Assembly (NCBI GenBank): GCA_020536535.1
Contig: JAHLWZ010000216.1
Coordinates: 1 to 55,449, forward strand
Reading direction: 5' to 3'
Source: Pelomyxa schiedti
Lineage: Eukaryota; Protista; Evosea
Length of the DNA: 55,449 nt
The notes beneath the pieces were generated by a model. That model was given only the letters and a program-made list of their open reading frames with translations, ran no database searches and was not told the origin of the DNA. This document shows positions 5,825 to 14,034 of this stretch, piece after piece; the first letter of the stretch is position 1; each line of letters begins with the position of its first letter. A program made the translations under genes and the position numbers.

Positions 5825-8813
5825 TTATCTGATGGAATTAATAGAGCAGAAGACGGACCCTAACAGTCCTGCGCAGCTCCGATTGTGTTGTGATCTGGTA
5901 TTCTGGACGAAACTGAATTGTGGGTTGGACGGCAAGTTCAGGGAACAAAAATCCTTGTGGGTAGCCGCAGTGAGTAGAAATAATGAAGGCACATACCATT
6001 CTTTCCCTGTGACGTAATCGCAGAATACCGATTTGAGTGAGGCACCTTTGTTTGACGAGGATTCGACTGTGCTCGTGGGGAGGAACCTCAGCCACAGCTC
6101 GTCGTAGGATGCCAATCCCCGGAAGTCACGGCAAACCTATGTATGTGTGAGGTGTTGGTGTGTCTAATTGTGGGCGAGAGGTGTTGATTTGTTCCACGTT
6201 GACAAGGAGCGTCCACGCTATTAGGCGTATTGGTAAATACTCACTGCAGAAAGCCGGAAAAGGGATTTTGGATCACAGTAGGAGAATATGTTGATCCATA
6301 ATTCATGAGGAAGCAACCAGACAACGCGGCTGAAGAGCTGCACGGTCCAGGCGTCTCCTTGAAAGTTTCCTTTTTGTGATAGTGGGTTTAGTTGCCCCAT
6401 TTTAATGAACCTGAAGGTCTACCTGATGGGGTCAATGGACGACCACCAGACAGAATGAGGCCTGCCTCATAGGAAACAAGAGTGTGAAATTCGCGTACCG
6501 GGGGTGTGTTTCCAATGTCAACGAGAGACCATTTTAATATTGATCCCAACCTCAGTCTAAGGATCAAACTTATTATTACAACCGAAAAGGAGAGAAGATT
6601 ACCTGAACAAAACCATGCTAGACGAGGAAGAATTACAAGTGCACACAAACATCTCGTCGCCAATCAAGGCTGCTGAATGACCTCGCATGGGAGGTGGGGT
6701 GGTCCCTTGTGTGGGTGGTTTTAGCCACACCCTCAATGACAAGTCTTTTTAGGTAAGGCGATTGATTTCGTTGATTGGCTGGCTACCGAAACTCCACAAA
6801 TCGTTGAGCTTCTGATTATCAGCTATTCCACCTGTGGATGACTTGGTCAGAAGGAAGAGTTCCGAATGTATTTCTACCAAAAAGGATCATCTTTCCATTA
6901 TGGCAAACGGCGGTGTGGTGGAATCTCCCTCTTGGAACTTGTCCAGGCTTAATTGACACCTGGGTAAGAGTATAGTGAATTTCACCTCACTTGGTTCTTC
7001 TTTTAATAGATGTATATCTGAACTGGTATCCAGCTTTGCGCAACCAAGTCATAACACTTCAGCTCCTCGGATGCCATCCCACTTGAGTCGTACCTTGCAT
7101 TTTCCCATCATGTCACAATAGAAATATTGGAGCTCACTTACCCTCCAAATATAAATAAGCACTTGGAAAATGCAACCATTGACGCCCCATATCGAGGAGA
7201 GGGAGATTCAGAAGAATTTCCTTCAGGGAGAAAGTACCACTCCCCATTTGTCACATTGAGACAACGCAGTGAATTGGTGTAACAATTACTCCTCCCTGTG
7301 GATCCAAACCACTAAGAAGATGATGAGAAGGAAGCAGAAGCCAAACCTCCAAAGAGGAACATCAAATTGTCAGTCATCCTTTTAAGATTGAGTAAAGGCA
7401 ATTGAAAAAATATGTTTATTGTTGTCATACACAGAAGCGGCAAATGTCATCCCTTTGTATGCAGTGGATGGATTGGACGTGTCGTTGCGAGCTGTGATTG
7501 GTGGCAACCAGCTGCCCCCTAAGAGTTCAAATCTCAAGACCTCAGGAGAAGATGGAGTTCCTTTGGCACATAAACCGCCTGCCGTGTATAGAATGGTCCC
7601 ATGAATAACTTGAGTGTGTCCGTACCTACGGGGACCAGATGTCAAAAATAACAAAAAAAAAAGTAGAAGGACAATAAACCGGGCAGTTGTATGCACATTG
7701 GAGTATAGTGGTACCCAAACAGGGTGCTGTGATGAAGGTATTGACCCAATAAGAGGAGCCACTGCATTCCACAGAGTGCTCTAGATAGGTTGCAAGTTAG
7801 TTTCGCTGAGAGTTATTCATACCCAAGAAAAAGGGGACGAGCTTCGGGGTATTTCTGTTTTTCCAGTTGCGGCGATTCTAACTGCGTGTGAAAAGAGATC
7901 TCGAACGTGTTCTCCCTTCAAGGAACTTGTTTCAATGTATGCTGAGGCGTGAATCTCTCGTGCTACCTGACGCCAAGAGAAGTGTTGGTAAATGAAGATG
8001 ATTTAATAAAAAGAAAACTACCCCAGATGCCATTTCAAATGAAACAGGTACCCGATCCTGCTTACGACGAAGAACATCAGTATTTGATCTCAAATCACGT
8101 TTCGTTCCCACAATGATGAATGGGGTACCCGGACAGTGATGTCTTATCTAGCAAATATTTTGGTATAGCAAAGAAGCTCTGGTATGGCTCACCTCAGGGT
8201 ACCACTGTTTGGGTGGAAAACAGGTGAATTAAGAAGTGTGAAGAGGACATGGTTGCAACCTTTGTCCGGACATTCTCCAAAGAGGTACGGGATGTGACCG
8301 AAAAGCATATCTTTTTCAAAGTTAGTCTAACTGAGGAGGAAAAAAGTTCACTATTACCAGGAAAATCGAAGTCCCAGGATAACTATATGGCCTCATTATC
8401 TCATGATCTCCCCCACCTTTAGTTGTAGCAGTTTGTCATTAGATGCAAGAATACGAAGGAGAGTCGAACGTGCCTCCTTGGTCCCACAATGTAAATGTGT
8501 AGGTTTTATCCTCAAGCTGGATGAAAGAACTTCAAATTGATTTAGTTATCAGCCATTTGTTTCTTGCCCTACCTATGATTTGAAACCTCCTTAGCCTGCC
8601 ATTAGTCCAAGCAAACAAACAAACAAACAAAAAAAAAAAAAACGGTACGCTTGGAACGTGTTCACCCTCGGGCCAGCATCCAGACGAGTAAGTAACTAAC
8701 AAACAGGTCTACTCCAAAAAAAAAAAAAATGAACTTGTGGGATGGCAAGGATTTAGCACACTGACCTTGCCCACGTTATAATCCCCGACCACGACCACCT
8801 TTAGGTCGCCCAT
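5825..8813 (-). CDS. Atypical Rho-family GTPase fused to six Kelch repeats and a C-terminal F-box (multi-exon; exact last exon uncertain)
   Basis: Reverse-strand exons give MGDLKVVVVGDYNVGK/TCLLVTY, TLWDQGGGGDHEIMRPYSYPGTSIFL/ICFSVTSRTSLENVRTK/WYPE/IRHHCPGTPFIIVGTKRDLR and YIETSS. There is no CAAX and no stop after the GTPase domain. Kelch blades follow (RRYGHTQVIHGTILYTAGG; LMFLFGG; PRYGASMVAFSKCLFIFGG; RGRFHHTAVCHNGKMILFG; PPMRGHSAALIGDEMFV; PVREFHTLVSYEAGLILSGG), then LLPHELWINIFSYCDPKSLFRLSA/VCRDFRGLASYDELW (F-box). Confidence 0.82.
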
Positions 8814-12810: not shown

Positions 12811-14034
12811 ATGGAAGAAGGCGAGGTGAAGGAGGCGTCGAGGCGGCACGTGGCGTGGGCGCGGGATCAATTCCTCGCAGTTGCACTGTGTCATCATCGT
12901 CGGTGTGGTCGCCGCAGTCCCGCGCGCGTGCTGCCTCACCCAGTCCTCGTTGATGTCATTGGCAGGGAACTCGTCATGTCGCCGTGCAAAACTGTGTCGG
13001 TCAATGTCAGAGTGGTGAAATATTCACCGGTGCCCACAGTTGTGTGTGTGGGCGTGTCATTCACTTTGGGTGTGACGTGGCTGCGGGAGAGGCAAGAAGA
13101 CGGCAGTTTTCAGACTTGCTTCGAAGACGGTGTTTTGGAGATGCGCAGCCGTGGCAGTGACTACGATCTGGTGATGAAAGACTGGGGAACTGGGTTGGAG
13201 CGTGTGGAATGGAGGGGCGGCGGGTTTTTTTTAAGCGAGGTGATGAGGAATGACAAGTGGATGCTCGTGGAATGGAAGAGGCAGAATGAGAGCCCCAGCA
13301 AGAAGCCAGAGGAAAGGCTGCTCCTGCCGGTTTTGGGGGCCAATGTCCGCGGGGAGTGTCGCAGTGTGATGGCCCCGCAGGGAGTTCATTTCAAGTGGAT
13401 TGCGATGTTGGACGGTGATGATGCCATTGTGTCAACTCTGCCCCTGAGCGGGGACCATAAGCTCAAAGAAACGCTTTGGCGTGTGAATCTGAGGGAAACG
13501 TACAACACCTCCCAATTTGTGCCCATTGCACAAATTCCTGGTTACACCAGCAACATGAATCGGCAGATTGAGATGATGTCGAACTCCCGCGAGAATGGCC
13601 TCATTGCGGCTGTGTGTGACCAGAGATATGGGTATGAAGGTAGGAATTCTTGCCAGCTGATACGATTGCGGCCAAACTCGAAATCCCGGGAATTGCTGCG
13701 AGGGGGAAGGCCCAAGCCATTCAGGATTGATTCCAGCCACTGGTTGGAAGCAGTATCAGATGACAGCAACCCATCCAATGTCACCCTCAGGTTGTTCTCC
13801 ACAGAGGACTTGGACAATCCAATTCGCGAGTTTACCTACCCCGATGCGGCACAAGTGAGTTGCAGCAACGGGTTCATTGTATTTCTTGTGCGAAGCAAGC
13901 CTTTCTGTCACATTGACATTGTTGATGCTCTTTCTGGCGCGTGGATCCTCCGCCACCCTCTCCCGTTGGATAGTGACGTTATTGCGTATTTGGACGGACA
14001 TGAGTTCGACCCAATCCATCCAAAACACTACTAG
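12811..14034 (+). CDS. Intronless 407-aa protein of a lineage-specific family (N-terminal HVAWARDQF..HxRCG..SPARVLP motif), paralog 1
   Basis: Long uninterrupted ORF with ATG in an A-rich context (aaacaaaATG). Collinear similarity over its whole length to 15206-16426. Confidence 0.85.
   Translation: MEEGEVKEASRRHVAWARDQFLAVALCHHRRCGRRSPARVLPHPVLVDVIGRELVMSPCKTVSVNVRVVKYSPVPTVVCVGVSFTLGVTWLRERQEDGSFQTCFEDGVLEMRSRGSDYDLVMKDWGTGLERVEWRGGGFFLSEVMRNDKWMLVEWKRQNESPSKKPEERLLLPVLGANVRGECRSVMAPQGVHFKWIAMLDGDDAIVSTLPLSGDHKLKETLWRVNLRETYNTSQFVPIAQIPGYTSNMNRQIEMMSNSRENGLIAAVCDQRYGYEGRNSCQLIRLRPNSKSRELLRGGRPKPFRIDSSHWLEAVSDDSNPSNVTLRLFSTEDLDNPIREFTYPDAAQVSCSNGFIVFLVRSKPFCHIDIVDALSGAWILRHPLPLDSDVIAYLDGHEFDPIHPKHY

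Follow-up and report, generated by a model that had tools for sequence, protein, structure and literature searches.

A Rac-like GTPase, a six-blade Kelch propeller and an F-box in one protein of Pelomyxa schiedti: a candidate SCF substrate receptor and its relatives

RhoBTB proteins (RhoBTB1-3 and RacA of Dictyostelium) carry an atypical Rho GTPase at their N-terminus, fused to a domain that acts as a cullin adaptor, and in an autoinhibition model the GTPase domain blocks binding of Cul3 by the first BTB domain (PMC4931677). Here we describe a gene of the anaerobic amoeba Pelomyxa schiedti (Archamoebae) that has this same arrangement, an N-terminal atypical Rho domain followed by a putative cullin-adaptor domain; it lies on the minus strand of contig JAHLWZ010000216.1, of which positions 1 to 55,449, the whole stretch analysed, are called the window. 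LZTR1, a second reference point, has the order Kelch-BTB-BTB and is a Cul3 adaptor for RAS GTPases. The F-box/Kelch proteins, among them FBXO42 and the plant FKF1/ZTL and FBK proteins, combine an F-box with a Kelch propeller, as the Pelomyxa protein does, and serve as substrate receptors of the SCF (Skp1-Cul1-Rbx1) ubiquitin ligase. In these proteins, however, the F-box stands N-terminal of the propeller and there is no GTPase.

Proteins with all three domains are also found in Naegleria, where Additional files 4 and 10 of the N. fowleri genome paper (Herman et al. 2021, PMC8296547) tabulate them, file 10 marking "Rac" genes as "Kelch, F-box", and where GTPase-dependent ubiquitination has already been proposed for such genes (PMC8296547). 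The Naegleria proteins share with the Pelomyxa one the replacement of Gln61 in the GTPase, in Naegleria mostly in the form DTAGPED, but their order is Kelch-F-box-Rho whereas that of the Pelomyxa gene is Rho-Kelch-F-box, and both are known from sequence only. An earlier reading of the window made from its letters alone (hereafter the sequence-only reading) had put the architecture forward as undescribed. That does not hold: the architecture is in GenBank, recurs in at least eight genera and has been tabulated for Naegleria (PMC8296547), and the present gene is a further member, with Rho at its N-terminus, of a catalogued kind of protein. Among the main texts of the literature we found no paper on the Rho-Kelch-F-box architecture, its prior mention being confined to those supplements (PMC8296547), and the genome paper of P. 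schiedti is without mention of Kelch, F-box or GTPases (PMC8887013).

One expressed gene encodes the Rac-like GTPase, the six-blade Kelch propeller and the F-box in a single polypeptide. Its splice model was assembled from GT and AG sites that hold one reading frame open and was then refined, giving a coding sequence of 21 exons and 20 introns that starts with an ATG at 8813, ends at 5938 on the minus strand (8813..5938) and specifies 602 amino acids. The introns are very short (42-108 nucleotides) with standard boundaries; one frame stays open through all 20 of them and every splice site is usable. GenBank holds an annotation of the gene, KAH3765393.1 (P0025), of 619 amino acids and named "ras C3 botulinum toxin substrate 2", Pelomyxa schiedti. 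That independent model and ours join the exons between the G3 region and the F-box in the same way and share a GC-AG intron; they differ in the last splice. The parts of the gene are as follows.

7823..8813, minus strand: Rac-like GTPase domain, residues 1-191, in nine exons (Pfam Ras, Rac3 alignment, Foldseek)
8573..8589, minus strand: micro-exon of 17 nucleotides encoding EVSNH-S, present in the GenBank model, with AG and GT flanks
8417..8473, minus strand: GC-AG intron of 57 nucleotides within the G3/switch II region
7781..7822, minus strand: GT-AG intron of 42 nucleotides between the GTPase exon and the linker/Kelch exon
6317..7780, minus strand: linker and six-blade Kelch propeller, residues 192-527, in ten exons (Pfam Kelch, AlphaFold2, Foldseek)
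6960..7023, minus strand: GT-AG intron of 64 nucleotides between blades 3 and 4, whose removal is required for the frame
6083..6316, minus strand: F-box, residues 528-569, interrupted by the 108-nucleotide intron 6244-6137 (Pfam F-box-like and F-box)
5938..6082, minus strand: C-terminal tail ...KEW/IFVP-stop with the terminal intron 5996-5954 (paralogue ends, locus L001)

The join between the GTPase and the propeller is the critical one. Splicing of 7822-7781 gives FSW/STLWNAV, and the paralogues conserve FSWGTLWNAV across the junction; if the intron is left in place the GTPase frame ends two codons later, at ...SWV-stop. Downstream of the junction there is no in-frame ATG before blade 1 ends. 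In Mastigella eilhardi, eight Trinity isoforms, of which one or more are flagged as complete open reading frames, encode Ras at residues 5-175, Kelch at 227-511 and an F-box at 538-578, and a transcript of Physarum polycephalum has the same Rho-Kelch-F-box order.

Within the GTPase exons, the micro-exon 8589-8573, which came from the GenBank model KAH3765393.1, brings switch I and strand beta-2 back to canonical length and leaves a one-residue gap in the Rac3 alignment. Two early models of switch I without it (donors 8648 or 8643) were dropped in favour of the micro-exon version, which is colinear with Rac3. The sequence WDQGGGGDHEIMRPYSYP is colinear with Rac only under the GC-AG splice 8473-8417; the P. 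schiedti genome has 7.43 introns per gene, 1.59% of its introns being of the GC-AG type (PMC8887013). A T-run followed by (GTTT)n occupies 8602-8651, inside the intron after exon 2, and the DNA-run contigs are broken at this point. Elsewhere in the window, a weak tblastn match at 13246-13584 was discarded as noise: it contains a stop and is without GTPase motifs.

At the other end of the gene, splicing of the 43-nucleotide terminal intron 5996-5954 (GTATGT...AG) joins ...KEW to IFVP-stop and places the end at 5938. In the family alignment the paralogues terminate in ...W-IFVP, and in the paralogue locus L001 an intron occupies the same place and phase and is followed by a last exon that is nearly identical in nucleotides. 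For these reasons the GenBank tail is probably wrong, as is the end at 5825 that the sequence-only reading had given the gene, and we rejected both the unspliced open reading frame to 5825 and the GenBank C-terminus (...GFLFPELAV...). The true C-terminus is probably the tiny last exon IFVP-stop at 5953-5938. RNA contigs are unspliced at the tail (5996-5954) and end near 5846. Two C-to-T differences, at 5968 in the terminal intron and at 6021 in the coding tail, occur in one contig of RNA run X1 only.

The RNA evidence comes from three single-cell RNA-seq runs, which share one sample and reach a depth of only 3-8. Its contigs span 5846-7626 plus 17 further bases. Seven Kelch introns are removed in them (7430-7379, 7346-7296, 7141-7094, 6877-6832, 6786-6745, 6602-6557 and 6422-6370), as is the 108-nucleotide intron 6244-6137 that splits the F-box, so that eight Kelch/F-box introns are confirmed. 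A possible ninth is 7679-7626, whose splicing is matched by a loose contig end with one mismatch.

Full-length profile and structure comparisons identify each of the three domains. On P0025, Pfam Ras covers residues 5-173 (112 bits, E 2.7e-32), and the match to Rac3 (PDB 2c2h, E 5.8e-50) is colinear over residues 3-175 with human Rac3/Rac1 with two small gaps. The Rho insert is present, with a two-residue gap relative to Rac3 at residues 120-135 and a helix at 124-129 in an AlphaFold2 (AF2) model built on nine family members; a Foldseek search with the G domain returns Rac1/Rac3 (template modelling (TM) score 0.76). Several Pfam Kelch families lie over residues 221-503 (E 1e-48 to 1e-13). The AF2 model has a G-domain fold and then 24 strands (residues 214-520) that make up six four-stranded blades, with the N-terminal strand closing blade 6; with their GG and W/Y-R signatures the blades fit a Kelch beta-propeller. 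Exon by exon, the Pfam matches to Ras and Kelch are weak, and the domain scores given here are those of the full-length protein.

The F-box is the most conserved stretch among the paralogues, where it is nearly invariant. F-box-like PF12937 matches residues 527-569 at 46.7 bits (cut-off 24.3, E 3e-12) and F-box PF00646 scores 37.3 bits (cut-off 20.5); the first F-box exon alone exceeds the Pfam cut-off. The F-box peptide given in the sequence-only reading is present, and the intron 6244-6137 divides it. Positions 2-44 of the 47 in the profile are covered, with the LPxE start and three helices, which in the AF2 model are all short (531-538, 543-552 and 554-562), and the sequence aligns with the F-boxes of FBXW7, FBXW8 and SKP2. 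There is no CAAX box at the C-terminus (...KEWIFVP), and the two rival last-exon models are likewise non-CAAX. The observation from which the analysis started, that the exons join in frame from a Rho domain without CAAX into six Kelch blades and an F-box, is thus upheld by a single open frame and by scores above the Pfam cut-offs.

Among the described systems, RhoBTB1 and RhoBTB2 share with the window protein the lack of a CAAX box. RhoBTB proteins, however, have two BTB domains plus BACK, engage Cul3 and are without a propeller, whereas the window protein has an F-box and Kelch repeats, and Pfam finds no BTB or BACK match in P0025 at E <= 0.01; the tandem BTB and BACK that would follow Rho in a RhoBTB are absent. 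With LZTR1 the window protein shares a Kelch propeller N-terminal of the cullin-adaptor domain, and the LZTR1 Kelch domain is the best PDB sequence match (E 2e-38), in entries titled as RIT1, MRAS or KRAS(GDP) bound to LZTR1 Kelch. LZTR1 differs in having BTB-BACK domains and in lacking both an F-box and a fused GTPase. Relatives with Rho-Kelch-BTB exist (P0153, P0155 and P0163). We rejected orthology to LZTR1: the phmmer score sums blade-shifted, overlapping repeat matches, so that the likeness is a resemblance only, and neither two BTB-BACK modules after Kelch nor an orthologous register of the blades is found.

In the Foldseek search with the propeller, KLHDC3, KLHDC10, FBXO42, the LZTR1 Kelch domain (TM 0.78-0.80) and KLHDC2 are returned, and every one of these closest solved structures is that of a cullin-RING substrate receptor. 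KLHDC2, KLHDC3 and KLHDC10, C-degron receptors of cullin-RING ligase 2, are six-blade propellers like this one, KLHDC3 and KLHDC10 having the best Foldseek E-values and KLHDC2 lying in the same range; unlike it, they reach Elongin B/C through a BC/Cul2 box and not through an F-box. PDB entries describe KLHDC2 with its own C-terminal degron mimic bound, and the Pelomyxa paralogues share the fixed W-IFVP end. That the IFVP tail might bind its own propeller is pure speculation.

The state of the GTPase switch bears directly on what the fusion could do. The motifs of the window copy are GDYNVGKT (G1), HVPSEVSNH (switch I), WDQGGGGD (G3), TKRD (G4) and ETSSL (G5), with the substitutions G12Y, A13N, T35S, T58Q, A59G and Q61G. 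Residues that bind the nucleotide are kept (GKT, D57, G60, TKRD as TKxD and the G5 serine), and neither the catalytic Gln61 nor the Gly12 of a cycling switch is present (Q61G, G12Y). From these motifs and from general Ras/Rho biochemistry, nucleotide binding without efficient hydrolysis is predicted. The loss of Gln61 extends to nearly all Kelch-fused Rho domains, in which DTAGPED is commonest and E, G, D, N, R or Y stand elsewhere; the residue is kept in plain Rac, in the RhoBTB proteins of amoebozoans, which differ in this from the window protein, and in two Pelomyxa Kelch-F-box-Rho proteins. The sequence-only reading had called the putative ligase adaptor GTPase-gated. Since G12Y and Q61G are found together here and Gln61 is lost across the family, gating in the sense of a GTP/GDP cycle of the Rho domain appears unlikely.

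At least nine Rho-Kelch-F-box proteins are present in P. schiedti (P0025, P0001, P0020-P0024, P0003 and P0010), along with two in the order Kelch-F-box-Rho (P0172 and P0187) and some truncated or partial models. One of the nine, P0010 (KAH3742681.1), has an added Vint domain (Hint-like, of the self-processing type) at residues 612-735, after the F-box. Outside Pelomyxa the Rho-Kelch-F-box order is found in Mastigella, Physarum and one EukProt species, and the Kelch-F-box-Rho order in Balamuthia mandrillaris, Naegleria fowleri, N. lovaniensis, N. gruberi, Willaertia magna and environmental sequences. All members whose domain positions were scanned have Kelch before the F-box, with Rho at either end, and the inverted order that had seemed special to the window protein is thereby the rule among them. 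In a parallel series, Rho and Kelch are combined with a BTB domain that replaces the F-box (P0153, P0155, P0163 and P0031 of Arcella). The logic of the window protein parallels that of RhoBTB, as the sequence-only reading had suggested, with an atypical Rho domain built into the same chain as a putative cullin adaptor. UniRef names are uneven: Arcella P0031 is called "BTB domain-containing" and several Naegleria members "F-box domain-containing protein".

In a tree of Kelch domains, the Archamoebae proteins form a clade (support 100/99) that is weakly joined to the Physarum group (79/79), and the window protein lies in the Pelomyxa and Mastigella clade (100/98); the BTB series is a clade of its own (99/94), and the Kelch-F-box-Rho type does not resolve. 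By its domain order, its FSW-TLWNA linker, its near-identical F-box and the clustering of its Kelch domain, the window protein belongs to the amoebal Rho-Kelch-F-box group. The best match in the ESM Atlas, to be taken as a lead only, is a cluster of 109 members of about 600 amino acids, commonest in haptophytes, with Ras in all of them and Kelch-propeller families in its automatic name; its score is below what the tool requires for more than a lead (0.81).

Two further observations concern paralogue loci and other fusions. Positions 1-6332 of L001 (P. schiedti JAHLWZ010000135.1, a contig of 11.4 kb) hold three Ras and Kelch genes head to tail as a tandem array, and a run of N at about 4565-4660 of L001, flanked by a duplicated last coding exon, looks like a scaffolding artefact. 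Other Rho fusions were also seen (P0026, P0070, P0034 and P0183): a Pelomyxa protein with O-methyltransferase, Ras and Kelch, possibly a merged gene model, and environmental proteins with Ras, BTB and U-box or with Ras and ubiquitin-like domains.

Several observations weigh against a functional three-domain protein from this locus. In the three RNA runs of the one sample no contig covers the GTPase exons (7662-8813) or the GTPase-Kelch junction; all three contigs that run across intron 7023-6960 still contain it, while its neighbours are removed, and its retention places an in-frame TAA after blade 3 and would end the protein before the F-box; the GTPase motifs of the window copy, in G1, switch I and G3, are more degenerate than those of any other member of the family; and the AF2 model is of moderate quality, with a predicted local distance difference test (pLDDT) value of 67.5 that falls to about 50 in the F-box. 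The expectation of one transcript over the whole gene is borne out for the eight Kelch/F-box introns that are spliced and not for the GTPase exons or for 7023-6960. The uncovered junction, together with the stop two codons into the unspliced intron, would suit a pair of adjacent genes, a small Rho gene ending in ...SWV-stop and a Kelch-F-box gene, that gene prediction had wrongly merged. We consider this highly improbable, and the fusion real, because the linker motif is conserved in the paralogues across the junction, a separate Kelch gene would have no in-frame ATG before the end of blade 1, complete Mastigella transcripts and the Physarum transcript encode the same fusion, and a paralogue has introns at the same positions. 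The retained intron has a weak donor (GTTCAG). In a paralogue an intron falls at precisely this codon boundary and in this phase (WIP/V), and the family alignment, Mastigella cDNA included, is colinear across the junction; for these two reasons 7023-6960 is regarded as a true intron and its splicing in this copy is predicted. Its retention could reflect splicing that is inefficient or regulated, with a truncated product of Rho and three blades as the outcome. It could also, with the degenerate motifs and the presence of many paralogues, some in tandem, be the mark of a decaying copy that is transcribed and makes no full-length protein. The frame is nevertheless intact over 21 exons with usable splice sites throughout, a paralogue shares the F-box and the C-terminal IFVP exon with hardly a nucleotide changed, and the three RNA runs amount to one sample of low depth, so decay seems to us quite unlikely, if less so than a merged model.

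We read the protein, with a probability of about 0.6, as an SCF substrate receptor with a Kelch substrate holder, an F-box on Skp1 and a permanently nucleotide-loaded Rho module. In such a receptor the F-box would dock on Skp1 and the propeller would hold the substrate. The Rho domain is taken as a permanently loaded module because its nucleotide-binding residues are kept, Gln61 is lost, G12Y is present and there is no lipid anchor; locked in this way and free of the membrane anchor, it may target or regulate the ligase rather than cycle. It could do so by binding Rho effectors or regulators, or alternatively it may fold back on the receptor, as the RhoBTB GTPase domain is proposed to do on its BTB domain.

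Other uses of the same three domains are conceivable. A Rho domain without GTP hydrolysis cannot be switched off by GTPase-activating proteins, and the F-box might then serve mainly to turn over its own protein, with Skp1/Cul1-dependent auto-ubiquitination setting the level and the Kelch propeller working in localisation or as an effector domain. The loss of Gln61 throughout the family suits this idea, as does the finding that RhoBTB proteins are substrates of their own ligases (PMC4931677). The propeller, on the other hand, resembles dedicated substrate receptors, and the Kelch-F-box unit stays together in both domain orders, as a receptor-adaptor pair predicts, which leaves self-turnover a rather improbable main role. 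Some yeast F-box proteins, for example Rcy1, act with Skp1 in complexes that are not ubiquitin ligases, and the protein might similarly serve trafficking or the cytoskeleton as a scaffold linked to Rho. Of the parts of a ligase the F-box alone is seen here, which is compatible with such a scaffold, but the parallel series in which BTB, a Cul3 adaptor, takes the place of the F-box suggests that the function in common is cullin coupling, and we hold the scaffold to be more doubtful still than self-turnover.

A bolder extension of the substrate receptor reading, and a long shot, is that a hydrolysis-dead Rho domain (ancestrally DTAGPED) was anciently wired to LZTR1/KLHDC-like receptors, where it would occupy or gate the GTPase-binding face of the propeller in cis. 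The three wirings (Rho-Kelch-F-box, Kelch-F-box-Rho and Rho-Kelch-BTB), in Amoebozoa, Heterolobosea and perhaps other lineages, would on this equally tentative view be variants of one such device. If this were true, the cis Rho domain would reproduce the LZTR1-RAS interaction within one molecule, timing when the ligase can take substrates.

To our knowledge the family-wide loss of Gln61, the fixed order of Kelch then F-box and the parallel BTB series are not in print. For annotation, the family genes are named plain Rac or Cdc42, which hides their architecture, and several models, KAH3765393.1 included, have wrong ends. RhoBTB and LZTR1 link small GTPases to cullin ligases in animals, with relevance to disease, and the Rho-Kelch-F-box family would make the same GTPase-ligase link by the F-box/Cul1 route, expanded to about a dozen copies in one amoeba. 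The family offers a natural test of the idea that a GTPase which is fused and does not cycle can still target or gate a ubiquitin ligase, and relatives in the culturable Naegleria gruberi, Physarum and Balamuthia make this test feasible.

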